From sequence record NC_041917.1: 64,000 bases of DNA, one strand, 5' to 3'. This document shows positions 1 to 64,000 of the stretch, in pieces. Both the position numbers and the translations under genes were made by a program. A model generated the notes under the pieces. That model was not told the origin of the DNA. It did no database searches and saw nothing but the letters and a program-made list of their open reading frames with translations. The stretch's first letter is position 1. Each line of letters starts with the position of its first letter.

Positions 1-243
1 AACGATAAAGATGTAAAAAGTACCCGCAAAGAACTTATGTACAAAAACGAGCAGCTTGAGAATCTATTAGAGCTACGCCGCAAGGGTATTCTAACCCGTC
101 AGCAGTTCCGTCTATTGACCTTTGATAAAGGTCTACAGGGCAGCACCAAGGGTTCTCCACTAATCGAAGTGTTCGAGTTGGAGAAACAAGGAAAGGGTAA
201 ACCAGTCCTTGTCCAAAAAGTTCGTCAATGGACTCGCACTTAA
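1..243 (+). CDS. C-terminal fragment of an unknown protein, truncated by the window edge
   Basis: The frame of ORF 37..243 is open back to base 1 (NDKDVKSTRKELM...). Confidence 0.6.
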   Translation, partial: NDKDVKSTRKELMYKNEQLENLLELRRKGILTRQQFRLLTFDKGLQGSTKGSPLIEVFELEKQGKGKPVLVQKVRQWTRT

Positions 244-332
244 TTTCTGGCCTGTTTTGATATAAACAACATAAATAAGTTTACAATAATAAAAATATTT
301 TTGACTCCATGTTGTTTATATTACATTCTTTT

Positions 333-357
333 AAGGCCACGCAATGTGGCCTTTTTT
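333..357 (+). terminator. Intrinsic terminator
   Basis: AAGGCCAC-gcaat-GTGGCCTT followed by a T run. Confidence 0.75.
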
Positions 358-371
358 ATTGGAAAAATAAA

Positions 372-1097
372 ATGATTAACAAAGAAGAAGTAAGTAAAGC
401 AGCAAGAGAAATTGTTCATCACATTATTCTAGATAATATCTATGGATATTTCGAAGAATTAGGTACACCAAATATTGTTGTGTACGGTTCATTCATCGAA
501 ATGACTTCTGGTTTTGATGTGAAGCCAAATGATATTGATGTTACGATTGTACTTGATGGGGAGTTACCTGAACCACGTCATAAATCATTCTATTTAAACT
601 TTGTTGAACTACCCATTAATGTAGAGTATATGAGTCGTGAATCATTTCAAAAAGAATTGCATTCATTTCAACCAAAATACTTTATGTGCACAGCTACTCC
701 TGAACTAAGTGAAGAAATTGATTCTGTATGGAAGAATAAAGAAATTCACGAAGTACGTTCTGGTATAAGTTCAGTAACTTCCAAAGCCTTTGATAAAGGT
801 CGTAAAAAACTACTAGTTGAAGATGACTATGATGAAGTACTAGGATTAAAAAATATCTATCATGCGTTTAAGTTTCCAATTTATGCTAAATGGTATTTCT
901 ATCCAGAATTGGCTGAACGTGATTATATTACAGACATTCAGTACTTGAATGAGATTCATAAAGGAATTTATGAGGCTTACAATAATAGTACTGGCACATT
1001 AGAAGAACGTTGTGCGGCGGTTGTACAATTTGCTAAACCACATCATTTATCATTGATGACTGGCTTCCGCATACTATTTCCTAAAAAGGTAGAATAA
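372..1097 (+). CDS. Pol-beta-superfamily nucleotidyltransferase-like protein
   Basis: VVYGSF...NDIDVTIV (GS + DxD motif). Start moved to ATG 372. Confidence 0.55.
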   Translation: MINKEEVSKAAREIVHHIILDNIYGYFEELGTPNIVVYGSFIEMTSGFDVKPNDIDVTIVLDGELPEPRHKSFYLNFVELPINVEYMSRESFQKELHSFQPKYFMCTATPELSEEIDSVWKNKEIHEVRSGISSVTSKAFDKGRKKLLVEDDYDEVLGLKNIYHAFKFPIYAKWYFYPELAERDYITDIQYLNEIHKGIYEAYNNSTGTLEERCAAVVQFAKPHHLSLMTGFRILFPKKVE

Positions 1098-1309
1098 TGA
1101 TAGTGTTTATAATTATTGGAATGGTTTTATTATTTCTATTTGGCCTCGCTGCTATTATTGGAAGTGTTATTATTCCAATGTATGTATGTGCATGGACAGG
1201 AAAAGTATCAAAGGGTGAGATTGCAATCAGTATTATAATGTTTGTAATTGGTGCATTTTCATGGTACTATGTGTTTTCTCATATGAGTCTCAACATAGGT
1301 ATTAGTTAA
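1097..1309 (+). CDS. Small membrane protein
   Basis: 70 aa with two hydrophobic segments; translationally coupled. Confidence 0.7.
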   Translation: MIVFIIIGMVLLFLFGLAAIIGSVIIPMYVCAWTGKVSKGEIAISIIMFVIGAFSWYYVFSHMSLNIGIS

Positions 1310-1446
1310 TGGGTGAAATTATTTTTGCATTAATTGAATGTTTAGTTGAATTAATGTGTATGGGTGCAGCAGGATTTTGGATTGTTATGTGTATTTTAGC
1401 AATTGCTGCTGTTGCTGGTTTTGGTTATTGGGCATATATTTGTTAA
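1309..1446 (+). CDS. Small membrane protein (45 aa)
   Basis: TAATG overlap; MGEIIFALIECLVELMCMGAAGFWIVMCILAIAAVAGFGYWAYIC. Confidence 0.55.
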   Translation: MGEIIFALIECLVELMCMGAAGFWIVMCILAIAAVAGFGYWAYIC

Positions 1447-1523
1447 GGAATTAAAATGATATTACTTATAAAAGGGCGAATGACTTTCCGATTATGAATT
1501 TTTAATCATAATAAGGAGGACAT

Positions 1524-2066
1524 ATGTTCTTTAAGCAAAAATTTAAAATCTGCTATGATAATGGCAATTTCGTAGAAGTTGATGATTTATTAGGATATAT
1601 TGGTTACACTTACGGTGCAGCCGAAGCATTCTACCAAAGAATGAAATTCACTGTTAAAATTGATAAAAGTAGCTTCTGGTCATATTCTCATTCAAGTATG
1701 AATGATTTGGTTGAAACATTTTACTTATTCACTGAAAACAATATCATGATTTCTCCTGAATTGTTTAAAGGTGAGTACTTAAAATATCGTAATCTAGAAA
1801 CTCAAATTTGGCACAGAAATCGTTTATATTCAATGAAACAATGGCGTCATTTCAATTATCGTCGCAGTCATACGACTACCTATGATCGTCGTATGGAAAC
1901 TATCGCAGAACGCCGAGCTATTGCTGGTGTTGTGAAAGAAGAAGGTGAACCAGAATTTCGTGGTCGCCGCCGTTGTATTCCTAATCCGTGGGATGATATA
2001 ATGGCTCGTCGCAGTCTTTCTTGGAAAGATTGTACAAAAAGAAAACGTCAATATAAAGGAAGCTAA
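1524..2066 (+). CDS. Hypothetical protein, Arg-rich C-terminus
   Basis: AGGAGG RBS, 180-aa ORF. Confidence 0.75.
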   Translation: MFFKQKFKICYDNGNFVEVDDLLGYIGYTYGAAEAFYQRMKFTVKIDKSSFWSYSHSSMNDLVETFYLFTENNIMISPELFKGEYLKYRNLETQIWHRNRLYSMKQWRHFNYRRSHTTTYDRRMETIAERRAIAGVVKEEGEPEFRGRRRCIPNPWDDIMARRSLSWKDCTKRKRQYKGS

Positions 2067-2093
2067 ATGCTTCCTTTTTTCTTAGGAAAAATC

Positions 2094-2915
2094 ATGAACT
2101 CTGATGATCTATTACAAGCACGAACATTACTAAATGAACTTACTGTTGAAGGTCGAAGCTTTGCTGCAACTCGTTATATGTTTAGTAACGAACCGTCATA
2201 CCAAGATAACAAATATTCATCTGAATTAATTAACTGGATGAATATCAATAATCTAATAGTACTATCCAGTACTTACGATTTAGATTCCTACTATACTGTT
2301 GAAATTTTTTCAGTTACTGAATTAGGTACATGTATTTCATGGTTCCTTTCATTGACAGAATATTATAATGCAGGTGTAGATGGTGAAGATAATTTTAGAT
2401 CTGCGGGTCAAGCATTGTTTACTATTATGAATAAGTACAATGAAACTGAACTTGAACCATTGATTAGTATTATCACAGTTGAAGAACAAGAAGCGTATCA
2501 ACATTTTTACCGTACCCAAATTTGGGATGCAATTGGTAATCGCGGAACAACAACTCGTACTCGTGAAGAAGCATTACAAGCAATTGAAGTTTCGAAAGGT
2601 CTTCTACCTATGTTTGAAATGTCAGTACTTCTTGGTGCTCGTGGTACTGATCCTACCCGTACTAACAACTATGTATTCAAAAAATGTATGGAAGAATTGG
2701 GCGAAATGGCACTAGAAGATCAAATCGAAAATGGCCTTTCATATAAAGATGCTGGTTCTGATGGGGTTGCTGGAGAAGCGGTTGACCTTGCTATTTGTGC
2801 AATGGATATGTTTGCATTACAGCATGGTCATTTAAATCCTGAAGAAATTCAAGAGAGATTTATTGAGTATATGAATAAAAAATTAAACAAATGGAAAAGT
2901 ACTTTAGGGAAATAA
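2094..2915 (+). CDS. Protein with C-terminal MazG-like NTP pyrophosphohydrolase domain
   Basis: KCMEELGEMALE...AGEAVDLAICAMD (EExxE...ExxD). Confidence 0.6.
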   Translation: MNSDDLLQARTLLNELTVEGRSFAATRYMFSNEPSYQDNKYSSELINWMNINNLIVLSSTYDLDSYYTVEIFSVTELGTCISWFLSLTEYYNAGVDGEDNFRSAGQALFTIMNKYNETELEPLISIITVEEQEAYQHFYRTQIWDAIGNRGTTTRTREEALQAIEVSKGLLPMFEMSVLLGARGTDPTRTNNYVFKKCMEELGEMALEDQIENGLSYKDAGSDGVAGEAVDLAICAMDMFALQHGHLNPEEIQERFIEYMNKKLNKWKSTLGK

Positions 2916-2916
2916 T

Positions 2917-3531
2917 ATGACAGATCATGCAAAGACAAAAGCGTTATTGGACGTTCTTGCAGAAATGAATCAACAGGATGAAAAATGGGGTGCTGATAGA
3001 AATCAACATCCTTTTCTATGGCAAGTTATTTTAGGTGAAGAATTTGGTGAAGTTTGTCAAGCAATTTTGCATGATGAATTTGGTGGTTCTCATGCAGGTA
3101 CAGCACGTGAGGAATTAGTACAAGTCGCTGCTGTAGCCTTGCAATTTATTGAACAGTATGATAGACTAAACGCAGTTCAGAACGTAAATCGTGAACCAAA
3201 ATTGGTTATTCTTGAATCTCCATTTGCTGCCACCGATGAACACACTGTACAAGAAAATATTGAATATGCACGGAAATGTGTTAGACATTCTCTTTCGTTA
3301 GGTGAAGCACCAATTGCAAGCCACCTACTTTACACTCAAGATGGTATTTTGGATGATAATATTCCAGAAGAACGTCAATGGGGTATTGATGCTGGATTAG
3401 CATGGAAAGAAGTTGCACAATGTTCAGTTGTTTATATTGACCGTGGAATTAGTAAAGGTATGGAATATGGTATCAAGGCTGCTGAACAAGCAGGACTTAC
3501 TATTGAATATCGTAAAATTGAGGAAGAATAA
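2917..3531 (+). CDS. MazG-like domain fused to a nucleoside deoxyribosyltransferase-like domain
   Basis: ILGEEFGEVCQA...REELVQVAAVA, then VILESPFA...APIASHLLY...GISKGMEYGI. Confidence 0.6.
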   Translation: MTDHAKTKALLDVLAEMNQQDEKWGADRNQHPFLWQVILGEEFGEVCQAILHDEFGGSHAGTAREELVQVAAVALQFIEQYDRLNAVQNVNREPKLVILESPFAATDEHTVQENIEYARKCVRHSLSLGEAPIASHLLYTQDGILDDNIPEERQWGIDAGLAWKEVAQCSVVYIDRGISKGMEYGIKAAEQAGLTIEYRKIEEE

Positions 3532-3809
3532 TGAATATCCGTCCAGTATATAATCATATTATTGCAAAGAAATATGAAAATGAACCAAAAAGTGCAGGTG
3601 GTATTTTACTTACAGCTAGTGGAGAGGATGAATCAACTCATGCTGAAGTAATATCTATTGGCAGTGCTTATAAAGGTGATATTAAAGTTGGTGATATTGT
3701 TTCTTACCTTGATGATAAACGTGTTCATATTGAAAAAATTGAAAATGAATATCTATTAATAATGCCAGAAGATTGTGTTCTGGCGGTAATTGAAAAAGAA
3801 GGCGAATAA
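3531..3809 (+). CDS. groES: Co-chaperonin GroES
   Basis: MNIRPVYNHII...KSAGGILL...AEVISIG...IKVGDIV...CVLAVI. Confidence 0.9.
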   Translation: MNIRPVYNHIIAKKYENEPKSAGGILLTASGEDESTHAEVISIGSAYKGDIKVGDIVSYLDDKRVHIEKIENEYLLIMPEDCVLAVIEKEGE

Positions 3810-3810
3810 C

Positions 3811-5073
3811 ATGCATAAGGCGTTGGTAGAATTACAAGCTCGTGGTCTAATTAATCAAAGTACTGAACTTTCAGTATTATCTTCTCTACTTGAGAAGGGT
3901 TCTTCAGTGTATTGTGGATTTGATCCAACGGCTGACTCATTGCATATTGGTAGTCTTCTACCTCTCATGACTCTGAAAGTACTTAAAGAACACGGAGTTC
4001 ATGTTATTGCACTTGTTGGTGGGGCAACTGGTCGTATTGGCGATCCAAGCTTTAAAGCACAAGAACGGCAAATGCTAACTGAAGAAATGGTAGACCGAAA
4101 TATTGCGGGGATTACTTCTGTAATTCGCAAATTTCTTGGTTCAGATACATTAATTGTGAATAATCACGATTGGACAAAAGACATTTCAGTACTTGATTTC
4201 TTGCGAATATACGGTAAATGCTTTACTGTTAATAACATGATTTCTAAAGAAGCAGTTCGTTCTCGCATTGAACGACCAGATCAAGGAATTTCATTTACTG
4301 AATTTACATATCCAATTCTTCAAGGAATGGATTTTGAACATCTATTTAATATTGGATGTTCTATTCAAATTGGTGGTTCAGACCAATGGGGTAATATGAT
4401 TGCTGGAACTGACTTGATCCATAAGATGCACGGTAATGATGCTGAAGTGGGGGTTATCACTTTACCCCTACTATTAAAATCGGATGGTACTAAATTCGGT
4501 AAATCAGAATCGGGAACTGTATGGTTAAGTCCTAATCATACTTCTGCATATCACATGTATCAATTCTGGTTGAATGTTACTGATGATGAAATGATTACCA
4601 TGTACCAGTACTTTAAACCAATGTCATTTTCGGTCGATGTTGTAAAAACAGAAATGGAACAAAACGTAGTACTAATGAAGAAACAATTTGCTTATAGCAT
4701 GACTGCATTAGTTCATGGTACTGATAAAGCCGATCAAGCATATAAAGTTAGTCAATTCTTGTTCGGTGCAAAAATTGAACTTGATATTGAGTCAATTAAT
4801 ATGATGGTGGATTCTGGTATGGAATCGACTACAATTATTGAACCAATAGGATTGATTTCACTATTGGTCGAAACTGGTCTAGCATCGTCTAATAAAATGG
4901 CTCGTGAGTTCATTACTAATGGTGCCGCTAAGATTAATGGTCGCAAAATTAATGAGTTCTACGATCCAGTACAATATGAATTTACTGAAGATGTTGATAT
5001 ATATGACAACCGTTATTTTGTTCTACAACGTGGTCGTGATAATTTTGTAATTATTCGAAATGGGAGGATTTAA
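3811..5073 (+). CDS. tyrS: Tyrosyl-tRNA synthetase
   Basis: YCGFDPTADSLHIGS (HIGH), QIGGSDQWGN, KFGKS (KMSKS), C-terminal S4-like domain. Confidence 0.97.
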   Translation: MHKALVELQARGLINQSTELSVLSSLLEKGSSVYCGFDPTADSLHIGSLLPLMTLKVLKEHGVHVIALVGGATGRIGDPSFKAQERQMLTEEMVDRNIAGITSVIRKFLGSDTLIVNNHDWTKDISVLDFLRIYGKCFTVNNMISKEAVRSRIERPDQGISFTEFTYPILQGMDFEHLFNIGCSIQIGGSDQWGNMIAGTDLIHKMHGNDAEVGVITLPLLLKSDGTKFGKSESGTVWLSPNHTSAYHMYQFWLNVTDDEMITMYQYFKPMSFSVDVVKTEMEQNVVLMKKQFAYSMTALVHGTDKADQAYKVSQFLFGAKIELDIESINMMVDSGMESTTIIEPIGLISLLVETGLASSNKMAREFITNGAAKINGRKINEFYDPVQYEFTEDVDIYDNRYFVLQRGRDNFVIIRNGRI

Positions 5074-5075
5074 TA

Positions 5076-5540
5076 ATGTCACAAACATACACAGCGGTAC
5101 TGTACCGTTATAACCACTCAGATTACTGTCGTGGTTGTTTAATGGGTTCATCTGATTCTGATTTGAAAATTTATACTGGAACTTCACAGCAAGATATTAT
5201 TGATATGATTTTACCAGTACTTGTTGAATCTAAATTAAATTCTGATAAGCATTATGAATATGCTGAATATGAACCAATTATTTTCTTTAACGGCATTACT
5301 GATGGTTATAGTGGATACGAAGAAAATTCAGCATTTGTGAATACTTTTGCACAACAATACTTAAATGAAGTACGGGGAATGCTAGATACTCAACTTACAC
5401 AGGCAATTACTGAAGCTCGTAAAGAAGTTAAAATACAAGAAGAACGTAAAGCTCGTGAAAATGCAGAATTAAATCGTCAACGTGCTGAAGAAGAAGAAAG
5501 AGCAGAATTTGAACGTTTGAAATCTAAATTTGGTGAATAA
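5076..5540 (+). CDS. Hypothetical protein with coiled-coil C-terminus
   Basis: 154-aa ORF in operon context. Confidence 0.7.
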   Translation: MSQTYTAVLYRYNHSDYCRGCLMGSSDSDLKIYTGTSQQDIIDMILPVLVESKLNSDKHYEYAEYEPIIFFNGITDGYSGYEENSAFVNTFAQQYLNEVRGMLDTQLTQAITEARKEVKIQEERKARENAELNRQRAEEEERAEFERLKSKFGE

Positions 5541-5789
5541 ATGAAAATATTTCTTGCAATTGTTGCCATGTTTATGTTATCATCTTGCCGAGTTGAATCA
5601 GATTCAACCAGTTCACCTGTATTTTCAGGAATTGTAAAACAAGATCCTCGCATTGTCACGGCAGATTTTGAAATGGACAATAATAAGTATCATTGTTTTA
5701 GTTTCGATCCCACTAAAGACAATTTAATTTTTATGTGTAAGAAGGTTAAAAATGAAGAAAATTCTTCTAGCTCTACTAGTACTAACTAG
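5541..5789 (+). CDS. Small putative lipoprotein
   Basis: Signal peptide with lipobox-like LSSC. Confidence 0.6.
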   Translation: MKIFLAIVAMFMLSSCRVESDSTSSPVFSGIVKQDPRIVTADFEMDNNKYHCFSFDPTKDNLIFMCKKVKNEENSSSSTSTN

Positions 5790-5940
5790 TACTGCATGTA
5801 CCAGTGTAAGTAATGGTTCATACGAAACGTATAGTCCATTTAATACTGATGCTGGTTATAATTGTGCAGTTGAAAGTTCAGACATATATCTCATTAATGG
5901 TGTACCATCTTTGAAATATATTTGTAATAAGGTAAAATAA
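5752..5940 (+). CDS. Small putative lipoprotein
   Basis: MKKILLALLVLTSTAC signal peptide and lipobox. Confidence 0.6.
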   Translation: MKKILLALLVLTSTACTSVSNGSYETYSPFNTDAGYNCAVESSDIYLINGVPSLKYICNKVK

Positions 5941-6470
5941 TGGAAATAACACGTTCATGGGCGATGCCGAATAAGAATACTTTTTCGATTAAGCCTATAA
6001 GGGATTTTATTGAACGCGAACTATCGAAAGCAGAGTTGATTGAAGGTGCAGTACTTGTTGATGCGTTTGCTAACAATAGCGTCTTCAATCCTCGCTTAAC
6101 ATATACAAATGATTTAGATCCTGATATGCCAACAACACATCATATGGATGCGTTGGAGTTTCTTAAATCGTTAGAAACAGGTTCAGTAGATTTTCTACTA
6201 TTCGACCCACCATATAGTCCACGACAAGTTTCAGAATGTTATAAAAGTTTAGAAATGACTGTTAACATGCAAACTACACAATCAAGCTTTTGGGGTAATC
6301 TAAAGAAAGAGATTGCAAGAGTTATGAAAAGTGGTGGTGTAGTAATGACATTTGGTTGGAATAGTGGCGGTATTGGAAAAACTGCTGGATTTGAAATTGA
6401 TGAAATCCTTTTAGTTGCACATGGTGGTTGGCATAATGATACCATCATAACTAAAGAAATTAAAAAATAA
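5940..6470 (+). CDS. Small DNA adenine methyltransferase-like protein
   Basis: VDAFANNS and FLLFDPPYS motifs. Confidence 0.75.
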   Translation: MEITRSWAMPNKNTFSIKPIRDFIERELSKAELIEGAVLVDAFANNSVFNPRLTYTNDLDPDMPTTHHMDALEFLKSLETGSVDFLLFDPPYSPRQVSECYKSLEMTVNMQTTQSSFWGNLKKEIARVMKSGGVVMTFGWNSGGIGKTAGFEIDEILLVAHGGWHNDTIITKEIKK

Positions 6471-6477
6471 GAATTGA

Positions 6478-6594
6478 GAAATACAAAGCCGTGCCTCTGG
6501 CAAAATCCAGTATAAGTCCGTTTACGCTTCATCGCAAGTACTGAGAGAATATTCCTACTCGTTAGCACTACCAACTCTTGGGGCGTTGTATTTC
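6478..6594 (+). ncRNA. Candidate 117-nt structured RNA (unassigned)
   Basis: Terminal helix GAAATACAA-a-GCC / GGC-g-TTGTATTTC enclosing GTGC/GCAC, CTGG/CCAG and CCAA/TTGG helices; intergenic. Confidence 0.55.
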
Positions 6595-6622
6595 TTTTAA
6601 GTTAACTATAGAGAGACAAAAA

Positions 6623-7258
6623 ATGAATATATGTGAAAAATACTGGTGGATTTCACATCACCCAAAAATTGTTGATTTCGCTGATTCAGCAATTATCGAA
6701 GTTACTCCACACATGGTTTGTCCAGAAACAAATCAAATTGAAAATTTATCAATTTTGAATACAAAGTTGCAGTTTTGGGTCGAATTCATGACTCCACATT
6801 TCGATGAACAATTTAAAATTCACGGTCATGCACATGATTGGGAATTAGATTGTGGTGGTGATACATGGGAAGAAGCAATCGAAGCCTTGTACCAAGGAGT
6901 ACTTGCAAAGTATGGTGATTATACACAAGAAGACTTGGACAAGCAACGAGAAGAAGCAATGAAGGATTTTGATGCTGATAAATTCTTTGCTAACGCTACC
7001 GTATTGAAAACTGAACCAGAAGAACGAAAACCATTAGAAGATTATGAAATCGATGCATTTAAACGTGACATTGAACATATTAAAAAATTACTACCAGTAC
7101 TATCAAATAAACTTAAAGATGCTAACTTAACAATGCAAGAATATGCAGATGTTGAATTGGAAATTATCTGTGCTGACCGTGATTTGTACGTTGCAACAAA
7201 ATCATTGGAATGTGGTTACGATGTTGAAGTATATGGTATTACGGATGAAAATAACTAA
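6623..7258 (+). CDS. Hypothetical protein
   Basis: ORF with start moved to ATG 6623 behind GAGAG. Confidence 0.7.
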   Translation: MNICEKYWWISHHPKIVDFADSAIIEVTPHMVCPETNQIENLSILNTKLQFWVEFMTPHFDEQFKIHGHAHDWELDCGGDTWEEAIEALYQGVLAKYGDYTQEDLDKQREEAMKDFDADKFFANATVLKTEPEERKPLEDYEIDAFKRDIEHIKKLLPVLSNKLKDANLTMQEYADVELEIICADRDLYVATKSLECGYDVEVYGITDENN

Positions 7259-7610
7259 ATTGGTTGGTATATTGAAAGATATGCCACAAAAAAAGAAATC
7301 CAGTTCTACACGTAAACGTTATACAATTATTGCGTGTGCACTAGATAAAAAAGGGCGAGTACTATCTATGAGGACAAATGATTATAATTGTTCTCACCCA
7401 TTACAAAAGTACTTTGCAGAGCAAGTAGGAAAACCAGAAGCAATATTTCTTCATGCTGAAGTCGCAACATTAATAGCAGCCCGAAAAGAAGTTCATAAAT
7501 TGCTTATTGCACGAATAGATGTGAAAGGTAACCCATTACCTGCGAAACCATGTCCAATCTGCGAAAAAGCAATTGCAGCATTTGGGGTAAAGGAAATTGA
7601 GTACACATAA
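7245..7610 (+). CDS. Zinc-dependent cytidine/dCMP deaminase-family protein
   Basis: FLHAEVATL...AKPCPIC (HxE...PCxxC). Confidence 0.8.
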   Translation: MKITKLVGILKDMPQKKKSSSTRKRYTIIACALDKKGRVLSMRTNDYNCSHPLQKYFAEQVGKPEAIFLHAEVATLIAARKEVHKLLIARIDVKGNPLPAKPCPICEKAIAAFGVKEIEYT

Positions 7611-7842
7611 ACATTTAGATGAAATAATTCAACTATTAACGGATGAATCAGATACTTATATTAGTACTGTTAAGTTTTTACATTCGATGATGATTGAAGC
7701 TAAAGAAGCTGGTACATATAACAGAAAGGATTTTAGTGCTGCATTATTAGTGCATAATTGCTTACGTAATAAGTACAAGCAAGATTTTAACGGCGAATTA
7801 CTTTCTTGGTATCGTCGTTTTATAGGACTATACGACAACTAA
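7597..7842 (+). CDS. Hypothetical protein
   Basis: TTG start behind AAGGA. Confidence 0.55.
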   Translation: MSTHKHLDEIIQLLTDESDTYISTVKFLHSMMIEAKEAGTYNRKDFSAALLVHNCLRNKYKQDFNGELLSWYRRFIGLYDN

Positions 7843-7852
7843 TAGGGAACAT

Positions 7853-8407
7853 ATGAAAAATACAATCATTGTGAACTTAGTTGGTGGACCATGTTGCGGT
7901 AAGAGTACTACCGCAGCAGGACTATTCGCTAAGATGAAATTACATACTAAGCAACAAGTTGAAATCGTAACAGAAGTCATTAAAGATTATGTATACGATG
8001 AAAATAAAATGGCTATGCAAGATCAAGTACTAATTACTGCAAACCAAAATCACCGCCTATTCCGGTTAAAAGGAAAGGTGGATTTTGTCGTTTCTGATGC
8101 TTCCCTTTTGAACGGAATTGTATATAATGAGTTTTATCATGACATGGAAAATATCAGTTCAAGAGTAGCATTTCAATTGTACGAACAGTACGAGAATATA
8201 GTATTTTTGCTTCCACGTAAACCAGAATACGATCAGTATGGTCGTACACAAACACTTGAAGAAGCAAAAGAACTTGACCGTTTATTTGTTGAAAATTTAG
8301 AACATTTACGTATTCCATATATTGATATGCGTGAATACACACATGAAGAAATGCCTGATCGTATTCTTGATGTTCTAAGCAATCGTTTTGGATTTGACGT
8401 TCATTAA
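7853..8407 (+). CDS. NadR-like AAA_28 P-loop ATPase/kinase
   Basis: GGPCCGKST Walker A; VVSDASLL; GRTQTLEEAKELD. Confidence 0.7.
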   Translation: MKNTIIVNLVGGPCCGKSTTAAGLFAKMKLHTKQQVEIVTEVIKDYVYDENKMAMQDQVLITANQNHRLFRLKGKVDFVVSDASLLNGIVYNEFYHDMENISSRVAFQLYEQYENIVFLLPRKPEYDQYGRTQTLEEAKELDRLFVENLEHLRIPYIDMREYTHEEMPDRILDVLSNRFGFDVH

Positions 8408-8465
8408 AAATTATATTTTATCAACTTTTTTATATTGGGTAAACGTTGACCTAAGTATTAAAAAC

Positions 8466-8508
8466 TTGATCTAGATCAAAGATAATACCCCTTCATATGG
8501 GGTATTAT
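8466..8508 (+). promoter_or_regulatory. FNR box (TTGAT-CTAG-ATCAA) plus -10 TATTAT: class II FNR-type promoter for nrdD
   Basis: Exact TTGAT-N4-ATCAA at 8466-8479; TATTAT at 8503-8508, placing the box centre near -41.5/-42.5. Confidence 0.75.
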
Positions 8509-8555
8509 ATATTTTAAGTGCGTAAATAATTCACCTTAACAGACACGGAGCGTCA

Positions 8556-10379
8556 ATGATGAATAATGATAGATTGTATAGTGACATTAACGAATTTCTA
8601 AACCAAAGTAATAAAGATCTTCTAAATGAGAATGCTAACAAAGATGCCAAGATTGTAAACACTCATAGAGACTTGCTTGCTGGCATTCTTTCCAAGCATT
8701 GGGCTGAAGATATTCTTTCTGAAGATTTAATGCAATGGCATAAAAATGGATATGGTCACATACATGATCTGGATTATTTTATTAGTCCTTTAACAAATTG
8801 TTGTTTAGTAAATTACAGAGATATGTTAGAGAATGGATTTAAAATCGGTAATGCACAAGTTGGAACTCCTAATAGTATTGGAGTTGCTAGTACTATATTG
8901 ACTCAAATTGTACTCGCCGTATCAGCTAGTCAATATGGAGGTCAAACATTAGCACATATTGACTATGGTCTTGAGCCATACGTTCAGAAGTCCTATGAGA
9001 AGCTACAGCAGCTTCAAACAGAATTCAACCTACCGGATGAATATGTGGAAAAAGCCTTACAGAAGGAAGTGTATGATGCTATGCAAGCCCTCTTGTATCA
9101 AGTTAACACCATCACGTCTAGTAATGGACAAACGCCATTTGTGACAATAAGTTTAGGATTAAATAAATCCAAATTTGGTCAAATGATAACTGATTCATAT
9201 TTGAAAGTACATGAAAAAGGTTTAGGTGTTGATGGCAATACTCCAGTATTTCCTAAAGTAGTTTTCTTCCTTGAAGATGGTGTTAATCTTAAACCTGAAG
9301 ATCCAAATTACTTTTTAAAAGAACAAGCTATGCGTACTGCATCCAAAAGAATATATCCAGACTTTGTTTCAGTACCATTGAATAGAAAGGTCACTGGTTC
9401 AAAAAGTGTTCCTGTATCACCAATGGGATGCCGTTCATTTTTAAGTAAATGGGAAGATGATAGCGGTACTGAACAGTATGATGGTAGATTCAATCTTGGT
9501 GTAGTTTCTATTAACTTACCACTACTTGCATTAGAATCCGAATCAGATGGTGATTTCTTTGGTAAGATCGATCATCATATGAATATGGCCTATAGAGCAC
9601 AGATGAACCGTGTAGAACGTCTTAAAAAGATGAAAGCACGTCAGAATCCAACAATGTTTATGGAAGGTGCAATTGCCCGTTTAGGAGCAGATGATACTAT
9701 TGATAAATTATTTTATGATGGATATGCTAGTATTAGTATTGGGTTCGTTGGATTAGCAGAATGTTCAGAAATCATAAAAGGGCATTTGAACAAAGATTAT
9801 TGTAAGTCTATTTTACATTATATGAAATATAAATGTGAACAATTCAAAAAGGACAGTACTTTATCATTTAGCTTATATGGAACACCAGCAGAAAGTTTAT
9901 GTTATAAATTTGCTAAATGTATCGAATTGAAGTATCCAAATGTTTTAAAACGTGACTTTATTACAAATTCATTCCATCAACCTGTGTGGGTAGAAAGTAC
10001 TCCATTTAGTAAGTGGGATTATGAAGAAAGTTTTGCATATCTAAGTAATGGTGGTAATATAAGTTACGTAGAAACACCAAATCTATCTAACAATATTAAG
10101 GCACTTGAAACCTTAATTGACTATGCGTATGATAGAATTCCATATTTTGGTATTAACCAACCAGTTGATAAATGCTATAAATGTGATTTTGAAGGTGAAT
10201 TTGCTGTAGATAAAATTGGTTTCCATTGTCCATCATGTGATAATAGAGAAGAAGGTACTATGTCAGTAATTAGACGAGTATCAGGTTATCTAAGTGCACC
10301 TAATAGTAGAGCGTTCAATACTGGAAAACAACAAGAAGTTATTCAGAGAGTAAAACATGAAAGACAATCGAAAGAATGA
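8556..10379 (+). CDS. nrdD: Anaerobic (class III) ribonucleoside-triphosphate reductase
   Basis: HIHDLDY, TNCCL, MGCRSFL, GRFNLGVVSINL, YGTPAESLC, CxxC...CxxC, RRVSGYL glycyl-radical loop. Confidence 0.97.
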   Translation: MMNNDRLYSDINEFLNQSNKDLLNENANKDAKIVNTHRDLLAGILSKHWAEDILSEDLMQWHKNGYGHIHDLDYFISPLTNCCLVNYRDMLENGFKIGNAQVGTPNSIGVASTILTQIVLAVSASQYGGQTLAHIDYGLEPYVQKSYEKLQQLQTEFNLPDEYVEKALQKEVYDAMQALLYQVNTITSSNGQTPFVTISLGLNKSKFGQMITDSYLKVHEKGLGVDGNTPVFPKVVFFLEDGVNLKPEDPNYFLKEQAMRTASKRIYPDFVSVPLNRKVTGSKSVPVSPMGCRSFLSKWEDDSGTEQYDGRFNLGVVSINLPLLALESESDGDFFGKIDHHMNMAYRAQMNRVERLKKMKARQNPTMFMEGAIARLGADDTIDKLFYDGYASISIGFVGLAECSEIIKGHLNKDYCKSILHYMKYKCEQFKKDSTLSFSLYGTPAESLCYKFAKCIELKYPNVLKRDFITNSFHQPVWVESTPFSKWDYEESFAYLSNGGNISYVETPNLSNNIKALETLIDYAYDRIPYFGINQPVDKCYKCDFEGEFAVDKIGFHCPSCDNREEGTMSVIRRVSGYLSAPNSRAFNTGKQQEVIQRVKHERQSKE

Positions 10380-10773
10380 AACTTGTTATCGTAGATGGGT
10401 GTTCGATAAGCCTAAAAACGGTAAGAAAAGAGAAAAAACATATTTTCCAAAGGGCAAGAAAATGCCCTTAAAAAAAGCATTTGATATTGTAGTGCAAGGA
10501 TTACTTGCAGGAAAAGGGTTACATCCATCCGTTGATTATATCTGGTACGCAGAGAAAATTTCAGCAGAATGTAATGTTCATGTTGATTTAGTTCGTCAAG
10601 TACTACATAAATTAAATCTAGAGGGATGTTGCTCTAAAAGAATACTGTGGGATGCTAGAGGTGGAATGTTCGCCATGCATACACGGTTAGATTGGGGTGA
10701 CGCAGTAGTTCCTTGGGAAGCAAAAGAGTATCATGTAAATATGGATAAACTTAAAGAGAAATATGGAAAATGA
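10357..10773 (+). CDS. Hypothetical protein
   Basis: 138-aa ORF overlapping the nrdD stop. Confidence 0.6.
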   Translation: MKDNRKNETCYRRWVFDKPKNGKKREKTYFPKGKKMPLKKAFDIVVQGLLAGKGLHPSVDYIWYAEKISAECNVHVDLVRQVLHKLNLEGCCSKRILWDARGGMFAMHTRLDWGDAVVPWEAKEYHVNMDKLKEKYGK

Positions 10774-10959
10774 TTCAATATGTAATTACTGAAGGAATAC
10801 ATACTGGAACTATATTTTCTATTATAATGTCAAGAAGTGTTGTTTTGAAATCTGACACTATTCCAGTTGGTACATTGCTATCAAATATACCAGATGATGA
10901 ACGCATGAAAATGAGATTTAGAGTTTATGATCCCAATTGATTTAAAAGAAAGAGAGAAT

Positions 10960-11436: not shown

Positions 11437-11440
11437 TAAA

Positions 11441-11803: not shown

Positions 11804-11807
11804 TATT

Positions 11808-12254
11808 ATGATTCACGATAAGGTTAATACTTTATGGGGTCTTCGTTTTAATGATTCAGAATTACTTGGGTATCTTCCAGTATTTGATGAAGAACATAAG
11901 GCTATTTCATATTATTCATGTGAAAATATGCATCCTGAATATGAATATCGTCGAGTTGTCCCATGTTATCAGTACAAAGTATCTGAAGAATGGACTTCTT
12001 CTGAAGAAGATTTCTTTATGCAAGAAAAATTACCCAAAAAGTCTAGGGAAGATTTAGTACTTCAACATGAAATCTATCGTGATGATTATATCAAGAACTT
12101 CCAAGACAACAAATATGTTGTAATTTTTGTTGGTTGTGATGATGGGGATAAGGTGATGCGTTTCAAAGATAGAGAATCAGCAATCAAATTTTTGGAAGGT
12201 ATTACCTATTATGATGAAATTTTTGATGATATGCTACTAATGAGTAATTATTGA
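11808..12254 (+). CDS. Hypothetical protein
   Basis: 148-aa ORF in operon. Confidence 0.7.
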   Translation: MIHDKVNTLWGLRFNDSELLGYLPVFDEEHKAISYYSCENMHPEYEYRRVVPCYQYKVSEEWTSSEEDFFMQEKLPKKSREDLVLQHEIYRDDYIKNFQDNKYVVIFVGCDDGDKVMRFKDRESAIKFLEGITYYDEIFDDMLLMSNY

Positions 12255-12727
12255 TGAACTATCAAACAATAGTGAAAGATGATTTGATTAATGGAACTGG
12301 CGTTCGCGTCAGTTTATATGTTTCTGGATGCAGTCATGGATGTGCTGGGTGTTTTAATGAATCAGCATGGGATTATCGTTCAGGAATACCATTTAGTACT
12401 GAACAAATCAATGATATTCGAATTGAATTATCAAAATCTTATGTTGAAGGATTAACACTTTTAGGTGGAGATCCTTTAATGCCAAAGAATATTGATACAG
12501 TACTAGAATTATGTAGAATCGTTAAAGAAGAATTTCCAGATAAAAACATATGGTGCTGGACTGGATATACATTAGAGCAAGTACTTTCCAATCACGCACA
12601 TGATGCATTACAATATATTGATGTATTAGTAGATGGAAAATTTGAGGAAGAATTAAAAAATCTAAAATTATCATTTAGAGGTTCAGAAAATCAAAGAGTA
12701 CTTTTTAAAGGAAAGGACTATGACTAA
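12254..12727 (+). CDS. nrdG: Anaerobic RNR activating enzyme (radical SAM)
   Basis: NGTGVRVSLYVSGCSHGCAGCFN (CxxxCxxC); GLTLLGGDPL; FRGSENQR. Confidence 0.96.
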   Translation: MNYQTIVKDDLINGTGVRVSLYVSGCSHGCAGCFNESAWDYRSGIPFSTEQINDIRIELSKSYVEGLTLLGGDPLMPKNIDTVLELCRIVKEEFPDKNIWCWTGYTLEQVLSNHAHDALQYIDVLVDGKFEEELKNLKLSFRGSENQRVLFKGKDYD

Positions 12728-24740: not shown

Positions 24741-25601
24741 ATGGAATATAACGGACAATTCCCGCACCAAACAATTGAATTTAACTCAAGTACAGTCATT
24801 GTGATAAACGGTGACTGTACTGAAGTACTTAAAGAATTGAATGAATTAGGTTTTAAGTTTAACACAACTATAACATCCCCACCATATGCTGAACAACGCA
24901 AAGATGTATACGATAGTATTAGTCCTGCTGATTTTCCATCATGGTATACCGGAATAAGTACTGACATTATGAATGTTCTTCATGATGATGGTTCTTATTT
25001 CTTTAATATTAAAGAACATGTTGACAAAGGTAAGCGTGATGTATATGTATACAAAACAATTATTGATATGTCTAATGTTTATAATTGGAGTGATGAATAT
25101 ATTTGGAATAAAACAAATCCATTCCCAACTGGTGCAAAAACTAGATTAAAAGATGGGTTTGAAAGAATATATCAATTTAATCATACTACGAAATATAAAT
25201 TCTTTCCAGATGAAGTTAAAGTTCAGAGTACTTCAAAATATCTAGAAAGTGAGAAGAAAAGAAAAAACAAAGGTGAACATAACGTTAACAATGGTTCCTC
25301 TATGAACATGACTAAGCGTGTTGCTGAAGACATGGTTAGACCAAGTAACGTTCTAACTTGCAGTACCAGTAATTTAAATATTGGTCATCCAGCAGTATTC
25401 CCTATTGATATTCCCAACTTCTATATAAAATTAACTACTGAGCCTAATGATTGGGTACTAGACCCGTTTGGTGGTTCAGGAACTACCGCACTTAGTTCAA
25501 TACAACTTGGACGAAATTGTGTTCTAATAGAAAAATCTGAACAGTACTATAATCTAATTATAGAACGATTACTACAATATGGTAGGGAGAATTATCAATG
25601 A
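24741..25601 (+). CDS. Beta-class DNA N4-cytosine/N6-adenine methyltransferase
   Basis: TSPPY (motif IV) N-terminal; HPAVFP and VLDPFGGSGTT (motif I) C-terminal. Confidence 0.92.
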   Translation: MEYNGQFPHQTIEFNSSTVIVINGDCTEVLKELNELGFKFNTTITSPPYAEQRKDVYDSISPADFPSWYTGISTDIMNVLHDDGSYFFNIKEHVDKGKRDVYVYKTIIDMSNVYNWSDEYIWNKTNPFPTGAKTRLKDGFERIYQFNHTTKYKFFPDEVKVQSTSKYLESEKKRKNKGEHNVNNGSSMNMTKRVAEDMVRPSNVLTCSTSNLNIGHPAVFPIDIPNFYIKLTTEPNDWVLDPFGGSGTTALSSIQLGRNCVLIEKSEQYYNLIIERLLQYGRENYQ

Positions 25602-43510: not shown

Positions 43511-43529
43511 TATAAAAAGGAGTACTTTT

Positions 43530-60431: not shown

Positions 60432-60806
60432 ATGATACCAAAAACCAACAGTACTGAAATCCAATTTGATGTATTAGTAAAAATCAGAGAAGTTTATGAA
60501 TTTGATTCAGAACTCTCTGATAGAATGTTACTTATATCTATTTTTGATAATTACAGAACTGGTGGTGGTCTTAGGTTGAGTAAGCTGGGGTACACTATCT
60601 GTGCAGAAAATAATTTGTATGATTTCACCCCCATTCCTATTAAAAGTCAGGATCGCAACTCAATGGTTTATACCTCACTAGACCGTATTTGCACTAGCCC
60701 CTATTATATAAAAGGGGATGTTTTGTACTTATCTGACGAATTAGTTTTGGCACAACTCACGTTCTGCCGTGACGATTTTATGAAATTATTTGCTGCATTT
60801 ATGTGA
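60432..60806 (+). CDS. Hypothetical protein
   Basis: FDNYRTGGGLRLSKLG...SPYYI. Confidence 0.6.
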   Translation: MIPKTNSTEIQFDVLVKIREVYEFDSELSDRMLLISIFDNYRTGGGLRLSKLGYTICAENNLYDFTPIPIKSQDRNSMVYTSLDRICTSPYYIKGDVLYLSDELVLAQLTFCRDDFMKLFAAFM

Positions 60807-60832
60807 AACACAAAATAAAAATCTGGTATAAT
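60803..60832 (+). promoter_or_regulatory. Promoter of the TGAAAC...TGGTATAAT class
   Basis: GTGAAAC-N17-TATAAT with TGG. Confidence 0.7.
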
Positions 60833-60950
60833 AAGCTCATTAAGACAGTTTATGGATTAATTAAAGGCACTGATTTCTCAGTGCCTTCTCTTTTGGCAAA
60901 TGGATTTGTGAATTTCAATACAGTAACCACAACACATAGGTATAAGAAGT

Positions 60951-62282
60951 ATGAGCGAAAAAACTAACGTAGATATTCTAAAGTATGATTTGAAACCATC
61001 CCAAATTTTTGAAGCAATGCAAGTTGCAGACTATGTTGGTGATAGTATGATGATTTGGGGTTCTCCTGGTATTGGTAAATCCGCAATTGCACGTCAATAT
61101 GCAAATGAACAGTATCCCCTTCGTAAAGATAACCAAGGAAAATTAGCATATCTACTTCAACGTGCCGAAGATCCTGAAGATAACCTAGTTTCAATGGCTG
61201 ATTATACCGAGTTTGCTAACTCATTACTAGATCAAGAAACTAACTTCATCGACTTCCGACTATCACAGATTGAACCATCGGATCTCCGAGGTATTCCAAT
61301 TCCAGTAAAAATGTACTACAATCTTGAAGGTGAACAGATTTTAGAATCTGAACTACCAAATTACCCAATGTATCGTACTGAAACATCCGTTGTTTGGGCG
61401 GCACCAGATGTTCTAAAACTACATCCTAATTGGAAAGGTGTAATTCTATTTGACGAAATCAACTCAGCAATGCCAATTGTTCAAGCTGCATCATATCAGC
61501 TAATTCTTGATCGTTGTGTTGGTGATATGGTACTACCAAAAACTGCATTAATTCTTGCAGCAGGTAACCGTGAAACGGATGGTGGTGTAACTTTCAGTCT
61601 TGCAACTCCATTACGCGACCGTATGACACACGTTGAAATGATTCCAGATTATAATGATTGGATTGAACATTATGCAATTCCTAACCGAATCAATGCAGGT
61701 ACTGTTGCGTATATCAAGAATACTGGTACAAAACATTTTAACACACTAAGTCCAAAAGATACCAGTCATGCAGGTGGTGCAAGTCCTCGTTCATGGACTC
61801 GTGTTTCTGAAATTGAAACGGCTCGTAAACGTCTAGGCACTTCTTCACCAGTATATAAAGCTCTTGTCGCAGGTCGTGTTGGGAACGCAGCAGCAATTGA
61901 CTATATCACGTATATTGAAAACATGGCTGATCTACCGGATGCAATGGATATTATGGACGGTACATTTACTGACTTCAGTAACTATGTAACTGACGTATCT
62001 AAGAACTACTTTATTGTACTAAATCTAGTGTATAAAATCATTGAATTCAATACTGCTAAAATTGAAGGTACTATTACTAAAGAACAATGGTGCACGTACT
62101 GTACTAACTTCTTAACGTTTATTGATGATAATTTCTCTAAAACACAAGCAGAACTTATTGTACACGCAGTACGTACTTTCACAGATGCAAACGTTAATAT
62201 CGCTTACTCTGAAGTTCCAGTATTCAAAACCTTTGTTCAGAAATATGGTCCACTTCTTCGTAAAGTACGTACAATGAAATAA
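60951..62282 (+). CDS. MoxR-like AAA+ ATPase
   Basis: GSPGIGKS (Walker A), DFRLSQIEPSDLRGIP, ILFDEINSA (Walker B), AAGNR, LRDRM, SPRSW. Confidence 0.88.
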   Translation: MSEKTNVDILKYDLKPSQIFEAMQVADYVGDSMMIWGSPGIGKSAIARQYANEQYPLRKDNQGKLAYLLQRAEDPEDNLVSMADYTEFANSLLDQETNFIDFRLSQIEPSDLRGIPIPVKMYYNLEGEQILESELPNYPMYRTETSVVWAAPDVLKLHPNWKGVILFDEINSAMPIVQAASYQLILDRCVGDMVLPKTALILAAGNRETDGGVTFSLATPLRDRMTHVEMIPDYNDWIEHYAIPNRINAGTVAYIKNTGTKHFNTLSPKDTSHAGGASPRSWTRVSEIETARKRLGTSSPVYKALVAGRVGNAAAIDYITYIENMADLPDAMDIMDGTFTDFSNYVTDVSKNYFIVLNLVYKIIEFNTAKIEGTITKEQWCTYCTNFLTFIDDNFSKTQAELIVHAVRTFTDANVNIAYSEVPVFKTFVQKYGPLLRKVRTMK

Positions 62283-62324
62283 TACTTTAGGGGCATATAT
62301 TGCCCCTTTTTCTATGAGGTTTAT

Positions 62325-63665
62325 ATGAAAAAAGAAAAACATGTAGTATCTGATGCATATGCAGCAGAATGCTACGAACGAATTATTATTGCACGTACTG
62401 CGATGATTATGTCTTGTCCATTCTTTGGAATTTTAGCTGCAAGACTACAATTAGTACCTAATAATACATGGTGCCGAACTTTAGCAGTAGATGGTAAACA
62501 CTTGTACTATAATGTTGAATTCATTATGGGAGTTGAAGACCCTGCTCGTCGTCAAGAGTATGAAGACAAACTTAAAGAATCTATTGATGGGATTACTGCT
62601 GAACAAATCAACGATGCATTAAATGGATTAACACATCAAAATCTATTGGCTGCAATTTGTCATGAGATTCTACACTGTGCATATAACCACTTTTTAAGAC
62701 GTGGTGCACGTAATCCTAAAAAATGGAACCAAGCAGCAGACTACGCCATTAACCAAATCATAAATCGTGATAAAAAAATGGGTGAAATTAAGAAGTCGTG
62801 GTTATTCAAAGCTGAATACGATGGAATGACTGCTGAAGAAATCTATAATATCTTAGAAGAACAAGATGGAAACGGTGGTGGTGGTTCTGGTTCTGGTGGT
62901 GGAACTTTAGATCAACATGACATTCCACAACAAGGCGATGATCAATCAGATGATGGGGACAATTCTGGAATACCAGGATATAGTACTGAAGAATTAGAAT
63001 CATTCATGGAAGAATTTAAAGATGCTATGCTAAGTGCGGCAATGGCTGAAGGTGCACCACAAGAAATTCGTGCAATGATCGATGAGTATAAAACTCCTAC
63101 TATTGATTGGCGTTCTAAACTAAATCGTACTATTCGTTCATTGATTAAAAATGATGTATCTTATATGATGCCATCTCGCCGTTCATGGAGTACTGGTTTT
63201 GGAAGTACTGGTTCATATTATGGTTCTCCAATTTATCCAGGTTTAAAACCAGATTTGGATATTGATATTTGTGTTGCATTAGATGCATCAGGTAGTATTA
63301 GTACTGAAATGCTAAAAGATTTCTTGTCTGAAGTAATGGGTATGACTAAACAGTTTAGTCAGTTCAAGATTCGAATCTTGACATTTGATACTAATGTTTA
63401 TACAGTACGAGATTACGTTACTGGTGAAGAACGTAAGATTCTTGAATATCCAGTAACTGGTGGCGGTGGTACGTTATTCACTGCTGTTTGGGATCATATG
63501 AAGGAAGATGACTATTGTCCAAAACAATTAGTTATGTTCACTGATGGAGAACCTTGGGGTTCTTGGGGAGATCCTACATATTGTGATACTTTATTCATTA
63601 TTCACTCGAATCCAAAGATTGAAGCACCATTTGGTACTACAGTGCATTATGAATTAGAGAAGTAA
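62325..63665 (+). CDS. HExxH metallopeptidase-like + vWA domain protein (DUF2201-like)
   Basis: TLAVDG, CHEILHC, DYAIN, ALDASGSIS (MIDAS), GGGGT, FTDG. Confidence 0.85.
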   Translation: MKKEKHVVSDAYAAECYERIIIARTAMIMSCPFFGILAARLQLVPNNTWCRTLAVDGKHLYYNVEFIMGVEDPARRQEYEDKLKESIDGITAEQINDALNGLTHQNLLAAICHEILHCAYNHFLRRGARNPKKWNQAADYAINQIINRDKKMGEIKKSWLFKAEYDGMTAEEIYNILEEQDGNGGGGSGSGGGTLDQHDIPQQGDDQSDDGDNSGIPGYSTEELESFMEEFKDAMLSAAMAEGAPQEIRAMIDEYKTPTIDWRSKLNRTIRSLIKNDVSYMMPSRRSWSTGFGSTGSYYGSPIYPGLKPDLDIDICVALDASGSISTEMLKDFLSEVMGMTKQFSQFKIRILTFDTNVYTVRDYVTGEERKILEYPVTGGGGTLFTAVWDHMKEDDYCPKQLVMFTDGEPWGSWGDPTYCDTLFIIHSNPKIEAPFGTTVHYELEK

Positions 63666-63707
63666 CAATACTAAATAAAAGGTCGCTAGGATGGCGGCCT
63701 TAATCTT

Positions 63708-63737
63708 TTGAAACAGGCCACATTTTTGTGGTATAAT
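63708..63737 (+). promoter_or_regulatory. Promoter of the TGAAAC...TGGTATAAT class
   Basis: TTGAAAC-N17-TATAAT with TGTGG. Confidence 0.7.
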
Positions 63738-63771
63738 ATAGATAATTAAAAAATACATGGAGTGTATAATT

Positions 63772-64000
63772 ATGAGTAAAGAAGTTGATATTCAAGATCT
63801 AGACGAAGTTGTTGCTGGTCCACAATTGGAATTCATTGATATTATCAATGCTACTAAAATTATGGAAGCTGCGATTGAGCGTAAAGCATTTTCAATCAAA
63901 GAACTAGGTGAAGTTGCTCCTATTGTTTCTCGTTTCCAAGAATTCTCTCAAGCAATCATTGCAGAACAAGAAGCAAAAGATGCTAATACTGAGGGAGATG
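63772..64000 (+). CDS. N-terminal fragment of a hypothetical protein, truncated by the window edge
   Basis: GGAG RBS; MSKEVDIQDLDEVVAGPQLEFIDIINATKIMEAAIERKAF... Confidence 0.65.
   Translation, partial: MSKEVDIQDLDEVVAGPQLEFIDIINATKIMEAAIERKAFSIKELGEVAPIVSRFQEFSQAIIAEQEAKDANTEGD

Follow-up and report, generated by a model that had tools for sequence, protein, structure and literature searches.

AGTACT, a HIP-like iterated palindrome in the genomes of Serratia phage BF and other Rak2-like jumbo phages

The stretch of 64,000 nucleotides analyzed here (the window) belongs to Serratia phage BF (KY630187 / NC_041917, 357,154 bp), a Rak2-like jumbo myovirus of the genus Eneladusvirus: 8.2 kb of it matched BF at 100% identity by megablast, and the offset of the match places the window at positions 62,001-126,000 of the BF record. 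It holds 96 complete annotated genes, all on the plus strand, whose products include enzymes of nucleotide metabolism, tRNA and RNA repair enzymes, two DNA methyltransferases, the tail sheath and tube, and virion proteins. Our subject is the palindrome AGTACT, the ScaI site, which recurs throughout this DNA. A preliminary description had counted 25 copies by hand in positions 1-8,100, and all 25 positions proved exact; it had further suggested that AGTACT is a maintained functional mark comparable to the HIP1 (highly iterated palindrome) element of cyanobacteria. We examined the hexamer in the window, in 345 of the 357 kb of BF (read piecewise, positions 1-50,000 and 62,001-357,154), and in related phages, which were sampled as pieces of 24-50 kb.

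Enrichment of AGTACT in the window

The window contains 164 copies of AGTACT (2.56 per kb), compared with 16.0 ± 3.9 and a maximum of 31 in 100 dinucleotide-preserving shuffles, which bears out the strong enrichment first described. Markov models of order 0, 1, 2 and 3 predict 21.5, 15.8, 31.4 and 69.4 copies, respectively; the order-4 expectation is high (139) because the overlapping 5-mers AGTAC and GTACT share the same excess. By the RefSeq coding-sequence coordinates, 160 of the 164 sites lie wholly within genes and 4 are intergenic. The 160 are read as AGT-ACT in 76 cases, as xAG-TAC-Txx in 25 and as xxA-GTA-CTx in 59.

Two codon-aware nulls were applied to the window. Shuffling synonymous codons within each gene, which preserves the proteins, their dipeptides and the codon usage of the gene, leaves 37.4 ± 5.3 in-gene copies (maximum 53) where 161 are observed; the three phases hold 76, 25 and 60 copies against 21, 3 and 13, and every phase is raised 3.5- to 9-fold. 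A stricter shuffle also preserves the dinucleotides at codon junctions and hence retains part of AGTACT by construction, yet it gives 75.0 ± 6.0 copies (maximum 87) for the same 161, with phases of 38, 13 and 24 and an approximately twofold rise in each. Under the codon-aware null AGTACT is the top hexamer of the window by a wide margin (z = 24.8), and the runners-up are mostly its own overlapping shifts. The excess inside genes and in different frames, as originally noted, thus persists at Markov orders 0-3 and in both codon-aware shuffles, and it is not confined to one reading frame. The two protein-preserving shuffles led us to reject codon usage, dipeptide content and base composition as artefactual sources of the excess.

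The enrichment is restricted to the exact hexamer. Among the NGTACN words of the window, the form with outer A and T alone is prominent (164); the others occur 0-45 times, and GGTACC and CGTACG are absent. All 18 one-mismatch neighbors of AGTACT lie at 0.5-1.5 times their codon-aware expectation, among them the two deamination neighbors (AGTATT, 45 versus 45.0; AATACT, 36 versus 39.6), and TGTACA, GGTACA, AGTACA and other GTAC contexts occur as expected. Looser enrichment of a GTAC core was therefore rejected, and the variants with this core that had been listed as also common carry no independent signal. No extended flank motif surrounds the sites, which show just a symmetric scarcity of G at -1 and of C at +1. 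Such all-or-none discrimination of a hexamer would be typical of restriction and modification enzymes and unusual among ordinary transcription factors.

The placement of the sites is close to random. Gaps between them have a coefficient of variation of 0.92 in the window, near that of a Poisson process, and of 0.90 over 264 kb of BF. Counts per gene are Poisson-like (chi-squared 78.9, 95 degrees of freedom; 32 genes without a site versus 28.5 expected), positions inside genes are flatly distributed, and close pairs are not in excess (12 gaps below 40 bp versus 15.9 expected). Regular spacing or helical phasing was rejected, the 3-bp codon period being the sole periodicity in the 264 kb. In one piece of the BF record, regions transcribed from the plus strand and those transcribed from the minus strand have the same density of sites. 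The four intergenic copies compare with 1.4 expected from composition, an excess of about threefold. Individual features of this distribution are as follows.

43521..43526, no strand: intergenic AGTACT, one of the four, overlapping the ribosome-binding site of gp186 (AAGGAGTACTTTTATG)
2258..2273, no strand: pair of AGTACT copies 10 bp apart, like the pairs at 5778/5788 and 30554/30564
12254..12727, plus strand: anaerobic ribonucleotide reductase small subunit, the gene of the window densest in AGTACT (4 sites, 8.5 per kb)
60456..62981, no strand: longest AGTACT-free stretch (2.5 kb), spanning the gp212 ATPase gene and compatible with Poisson spacing

Two annotations may be qualified here. Another of the AGTACT-richest genes, gp164 (32016-32459; 6.8 sites per kb), is annotated as a starvation-inducible transcriptional regulator; its product is a DUF5856 protein with a weak ferritin-like (Dps-type) match and is not recognizably a sequence-specific regulator. 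The product of gp213 (62325-63665), annotated as an HNH endonuclease, matches the Pfam families DUF2201_N (putative metallopeptidase) and DUF2201 (VWA-like), not HNH.

Clade, turnover and promoters

Across 345 kb of BF there are 1,036 copies of AGTACT (3.0 per kb), with at least 6 in each 5-kb bin. In the same DNA, GCGC, CTTAAG, CTGCAG and CAGCTG do not occur at all and there is a single GATATC, although the window alone would be expected to hold about 15-19 copies each of CTTAAG and GATATC, about 7 each of CTGCAG and CAGCTG, and 52 of GCGC. The rule cited earlier, that phages deplete 6-bp palindromes, accordingly holds for BF, with AGTACT as one large exception. The same combination of a 7- to 12-fold AGTACT excess, AGTACT as the top hexamer and no GCGC is common to the samples of six further phages:

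Pectobacterium phage CBB, 50-kb sample: 137 AGTACT
Cronobacter phage GAP32, 50-kb sample: 128 AGTACT
Yersinia phage fHe-Yen9-04, 50-kb sample: 136 AGTACT
Escherichia coli phage TH47 (Asteriusvirus), 42.6-kb sample: 87 AGTACT
Klebsiella phage RaK2, 48-kb and 24-kb samples: 108 and 65 AGTACT
Xanthomonas phage XaC1, 40.5-kb sample: 159 AGTACT

The enriched set of seven phages comprises four named genera and the unclassified XaC1. The excess does not extend to two more distant jumbo relatives: there are 8 copies versus 11.5 expected in Stenotrophomonas phage RAS14 and none versus 6.7 expected in Xanthomonas phage XacN1, which avoids 27 other palindromes as well. This contrast indicates that the trait arose in, and was kept by, the Rak2-like phages, and the AGTACT excess is specific to this clade of enterobacterial jumbo phages. 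A lactococcal 936 phage likewise has no copy versus 6.9 expected, and in the one stretch of E. coli K-12 that was sampled (50 kb) there are 3 versus 11.6, about 50-fold below the phage density. Avoidance of GATATC varies by lineage, with 0 copies in the CBB sample and 21 in that of TH47.

We also scanned 2.9 million viral contigs for clusters of three AGTACT sites. Outside the Rak2-like phages, most of the strongly enriched contigs examined proved to be tandem-repeat arrays with a period between 18 and 30 bp; in unrelated viral and giant-virus contigs of IMG/VR, AGTACT stands in strictly periodic arrays (18, 27 or 30 bp) without dispersed enrichment. The 31.8-kb metagenomic contig IMGVR_UViG_3300011833_000042 differs from these: its positions 1-9082 carry 28 evenly spread copies in 9 kb versus 3.5 expected and no GCGC, and the similarity of its proteins to those of BF is weak. 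The contig probably comes from an uncultured phage of the Rak2-like clade that is more distant from BF.

Individual sites are replaced readily while their number is held. When BF and CBB (70% nucleotide identity) are aligned by codons, CBB also has AGTACT at 46 of 119 BF sites, compared with conservation of about 20% for ordinary hexamers, and CBB holds 120 copies in the aligned DNA where BF has 119. Alignment with fHe-Yen9-04 (74% identity) gives 56 conserved sites of 116, against 29% for ordinary hexamers, so that 39-48% of sites are common to BF and one or the other relative. Conserved amino acid contexts that synonymously permit AGTACT are occupied in 40-76% of cases in each phage, nearly independently between phages (for Ser-Thr, 13 shared versus 11.8 expected). 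A comparison of four genomes found 24 sites in all four and 39, 32, 28 and 22 in one lineage only, and ancestral AGTACT was retained at 0.70-0.82, compared with 0.50-0.61 for other, equally conserved hexamers. Where a lineage-specific site is a single step from the sister sequence, the differences fall on all six positions and include many substitution types; most such sites lie 2-3 changes away, amino acid changes included. Judged from these alignments, a persistent pressure that is weak at each site appears to hold the total density of AGTACT, with single sites exchangeable.

The pressure extends to the proteins. Relative to shuffled proteins, those of the window contain 132 Ser-Thr pairs versus 94 expected (z = 4.4) and 145 Val-Leu pairs versus 98 (z = 5.2); the reverse pairs, Thr-Ser and Leu-Val, are not raised. 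Ser-Thr is encoded as AGTACT in 76 of the 132 pairs (58%) where codon usage predicts 15%, and 60 of the 145 Val-Leu pairs read A-GTA-CT. The third phase is filled from unfavorable material: 25 of 64 permissive Tyr contexts use AG-TAC-T even though TAC is a minor codon for Tyr (24%) and xAG codons are minor for Lys, Glu and Gln (11-21%). The pressure for AGTACT has thus raised the frequency of Ser-Thr and Val-Leu and reshaped protein sequence. Gly-Thr is also in excess (120 versus 81, z = 4.8), yet GGTACT is not enriched in the DNA (42 versus 39).

The only positional link of AGTACT to a known process is found outside the window, in early promoters. The first 25 kb of the BF record, a region of small early genes, carries 6.5 AGTACT per kb, and 12 per kb in its intergenic DNA. 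Many of the copies stand in early promoters of sigma-70 type that have the form aaaAGTACT-TGCAA/TGACA ... (g)AGTACT-t/g-TATAAT, in which one copy abuts the -35 hexamer and the other stands just upstream of the -10 hexamer, 20-21 bp apart. Eleven such double-site promoters lie in BF 1-20 kb (record positions 3351-16730), among them one at 7750-7790, and the same class occurs in the early region of GAP32 (7761-19870) with copies 20-22 bp apart, where it accounts for 2 of the 3 promoters annotated by the authors of that genome. The self-complementary pairs in these promoters also score as hairpins. The promoter-type string AGTACT[GT]TA[TA]AAT is absent from the window, where none of the 164 sites is followed by a -10 hexamer, and a middle-region promoter common to BF and GAP32 is without AGTACT.

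Promoter-like words of another kind are scarce in the window. Of all in-gene hexamers, TAAATA (11 versus 50) and its complement TATTTA (4 versus 42) fall furthest below the codon-aware null. Both words correspond to the core of the T4-type late promoter (TATAAATA), for which ATAAATA has been proposed in CBB, and their depletion suggests that late-promoter-like words are purged inside genes on both strands.

A proposed reader and its rivals

We propose, tentatively, that AGTACT is a selected, genome-wide iterated palindrome of HIP1-like kind that is read by a symmetric DNA-binding protein. Weak selection at each site would act on total density. We prefer selection to a repair drive because no neighbor of AGTACT is depleted and because gains use all substitution paths. 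The reader would be a symmetric, probably dimeric, sequence-specific protein that binds double-stranded AGTACT with the discrimination of a restriction enzyme, as the palindromic motif and its enzyme-like stringency suggest; it may mark or organize the phage DNA, and the same protein may act on early promoters through the two copies 20-22 bp apart beside the -35 and -10 elements. Of the maintained functional mark first postulated, maintenance stands, on the clade-wide distribution, the nulls in all frames, the retention of ancestral sites and the imprint on proteins; the specific functions suggested for it are hypothetical. A binding site for a putative symmetric DNA-binding protein is the best remaining of these.

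Several observations weigh against a dedicated reader. A Pfam scan of about 30 proteins encoded in and near the window, mostly without assigned function, found no DNA-binding or restriction-enzyme-like domain. Spacing is essentially Poisson, with a mild, non-significant lack of pairs below 100 bp over the 264 kb of BF (Kolmogorov-Smirnov p = 0.09), and hence no required regular spacing is seen. Intergenic density in the window is below that of coding DNA (0.9 versus 2.7 per kb). The double-site promoters include near-identical modules that may partly be duplications, and they are not all independent evidence. Finally, selection and a sequence-specific fixation bias both predict a density kept with turnover, and the data do not cleanly separate the two.

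A bolder possibility, in which we place less confidence, is that AGTACT is a clade-specific mark of "self", present in about 1,000 copies per genome, by which a phage-encoded and possibly virion-delivered symmetric reader tells phage from host DNA. Such a reader would control early promoters and direct protection, transcription or replication to phage DNA. If true, this would be functionally equivalent to the hydroxymethyl-cytosine mark of T4, except that the signal would lie in the sequence and not in chemical hypermodification of bases.

It is also conceivable, if rather doubtful, that the signal is a methylated site. AGTACT would then be the target of a phage methyltransferase and, as has been suspected of HIP1, could tag self DNA, switch promoters or allow strands to be discriminated. 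The window encodes two DNA methyltransferases:

24741..25601, plus strand: gp151, a beta-class amino-methyltransferase of N4-cytosine type (Pfam N6_N4_Mtase, PF01555, E = 2e-37)
5940..6470, plus strand: gp129, a small DPPY-motif (adenine-type) DNA methyltransferase whose translation has FDPPY, with no Pfam match

The closest relative of gp151 with a solved structure is M.PvuII, an N4-cytosine methylase (E = 6e-19), and in gp151 motif IV (SPPY, residues 46-49) and motif I (FGGSGTT, near the C-terminus) follow the beta-class order. M.ScaI and ScaI-type modification are likewise of the N4-cytosine type, which makes gp151 the natural candidate for an AGTACT methylase that would produce AGTA-m4C-T in BF. 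The strict hexamer specificity resembles recognition by a methylase or restriction enzyme, and the modifiable cytosine would fall at about -36 and -15 in the early promoters. However, gp151 orthologues are found only in phages of the Eneladusvirus and Mimasvirus type, the next-best phage match being 52% identical and from a Cellulophaga phage, and they are absent from the records of RaK2, Asteriusvirus (TH47) and XaC1, all of which are enriched in AGTACT. The homologues of gp151 found in metagenomes are orphans located in phage or prophage DNA, and those examined have no adjoining restriction gene to reveal their specificity.

The remaining methylases do not fill this gap. gp129 has homologues in Eneladusvirus and, apart from these, just in a few Gram-positive phages. 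In the fHe-Yen9-04 sample the gp129-type methylase is directly followed (6776-7708) by a 310-residue nuclease with DUF723 and a treble-clef zinc finger; at the same place BF has just a 150-bp gap (6470-6623) with one AGTACT. This annotated endonuclease was rejected as a restriction enzyme, being a homing-type zinc-finger nuclease. The sole methylase family shared by every enriched genus tested is the PF05869 Dam family, represented in BF by gp063 (record positions 31476-32015). A lactococcal relative, about 50% identical, was shown experimentally to be specific for G-m6A-TC (PMC4190342), and by this homology the shared enzyme is probably GATC-specific as well. Geobacillus and Lactococcus phages with the PF05869 family have 1 and 0 copies of AGTACT, respectively, and no excess. 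The second methylase of RaK2 (gp194) is a C5 enzyme, and the authors of that genome report CpG methylation (PMC3622015). A conserved AGTACT methylase accordingly appears unlikely, no methylase of plausible specificity common to all enriched lineages having been found, and this lowers our estimate of the methylation model. The methylation tag offered in the preliminary description is likewise weakened. We suggest instead that gp151 may have been acquired later and that it plausibly shields the approximately 1,000 ScaI-type sites of BF and closely related phages from host restriction, in which case it would not account for the existence of the sites.

A functionless molecular drive, in which sequence-specific repair, gene conversion or mutational bias makes AGTACT from near-cognates, appears unlikely. 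It would fit a density kept with rapid positional turnover, the Poisson-like distribution of sites and a force at each site that is weak (occupancy odds of about 8 times the codon-usage expectation), and T4-like phages recombine heavily. Yet no neighbor is depleted, not even the two products of deamination; single-step changes involve each of the six positions and substitutions of many kinds; most lineage-specific sites differ by 2-3 changes that include amino acid replacements; and the annotation read showed no Vsr-like gene. The fixed register of the promoter copies points to use. A Vsr-like repair footprint was rejected on the undepleted neighbors and on the substitutions over all positions.

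It is very improbable that the excess reflects a physical property of the DNA, namely a flexible GTAC/TA step that would ease bending and packing of a 350-kb genome without any specific reader. The excess is indeed genome-wide and independent of position, in phages with very large heads, but near variants of the hexamer should share such a property and are not enriched, no helical-period signal accompanies the 3-bp codon period, and there is no excess in RAS14 and XacN1, which are more remote but also jumbo phages. Least credible, to a degree that we consider negligible, is an artefact of codon usage, dipeptide content, base composition or many cryptic promoters: AGT, ACT and GTA are preferred codons, the order-4 expectation approaches the observed count and AGTACT is present in early promoters, but each phase is raised over both protein-preserving shuffles, the Tyr contexts are filled although TAC and xAG are minor codons, the order-4 value reuses the enriched 5-mers, and the window is devoid of the promoter-type string.

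Relation to known systems and significance

How does AGTACT compare with other iterated words? HIP1, the palindrome GCGATCGC of cyanobacteria, contains sites of resident methylases. Both HIP1 and AGTACT are short perfect palindromes, over-represented many-fold in coding DNA in all frames and in non-coding DNA; both are shared by a clade and turn over in position by point substitution. The HIP1-like pattern claimed at the outset is therefore a fair likeness. Unlike HIP1, AGTACT is a hexamer rather than an octamer and has another sequence, and it occurs in enterobacterial phages without GCGC, so that it is HIP-like and not HIP1. In addition, it lies in lytic phage genomes that otherwise purge palindromes, apparently has no cognate methylase conserved across its clade, and is built into early promoters in a fixed register.

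AGTACT is also a type II recognition sequence (ScaI/Eco255I type) in a genome that avoids other such sites, yet its sign is reversed with respect to restriction-site avoidance, being 7- to 12-fold enriched where XacN1 and the lactococcal 936 phage do avoid it. With the CCWGG sites of the Vsr/Dcm system of E. coli it has in common the over-representation of a methylase-type palindrome in coding DNA; the diagnostic depletion of deamination neighbors and a Vsr-like gene in the annotation read are missing.

Like Chi, KOPS (FtsK-orienting polar sequences) and the DNA uptake sequences DUS and USS, AGTACT is a frequent short word, dense enough for a genome-wide function, with exchangeable copies and a contrast between self and foreign DNA. 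Those words are asymmetric and orientation-dependent, or 9-12 bp long, whereas a palindrome carries no orientation. Of the repair or recombination signal suggested earlier, the oriented, Chi-type form is thus incompatible with AGTACT. The E. coli Chi octamer itself, GCTGGTGG, has 17 copies and its complement 12 in 345 kb of BF, compared with 1.7 and 0.9 expected from a first-order and 10.9 and 6.1 from a fifth-order Markov model. It is densest at 176-226 kb and 1-50 kb of the BF record, and the piece at 176-226 kb has 7 copies on the plus strand and 0 on the minus strand. This excess may be a codon effect (GCT GGT GG) or a real enrichment of Chi.

The binding site of SlmA, the nucleoid occlusion protein of Enterobacteria, is a 12-bp palindrome, GTGAGTACTCAC, whose central six bases are AGTACT. 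Mimicry of this site was rejected: neither GTGAGTACTCAC nor the TGAGTACTCA core occurs in 345 kb of BF, GAGTACTC accounts for just 4 of the 1,036 BF sites, and no flanking bases are rarer than the SlmA-type G at -1 and C at +1.

What is the relevance of AGTACT for the biology of these phages? Neither AGTACT nor ScaI is mentioned in the genome papers of BF, CBB, RaK2, the Erwinia Eneladusviruses and fEgEco12, and full-text literature searches returned no report of the enrichment. AGTACT is a HIP-like iterated palindrome in a phage clade, for which we found no earlier report. Phages are the textbook avoiders of palindromes, which makes it surprising that the enriched genera carry a single palindrome about 1,000 times in each genome. 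Its density offers a simple diagnostic of the Rak2-like clade in metagenomes, and ScaI-type restriction systems are predicted to be either devastating to these phages or fully countered by them. With their small genomes and fast life cycle, they may provide a tractable model for what HIP1-type palindromes are for. The finding implies a sequence-specific reader or process that has gone unrecognized in a group of phages developed for the biocontrol of Erwinia, Pectobacterium, Klebsiella and E. coli.

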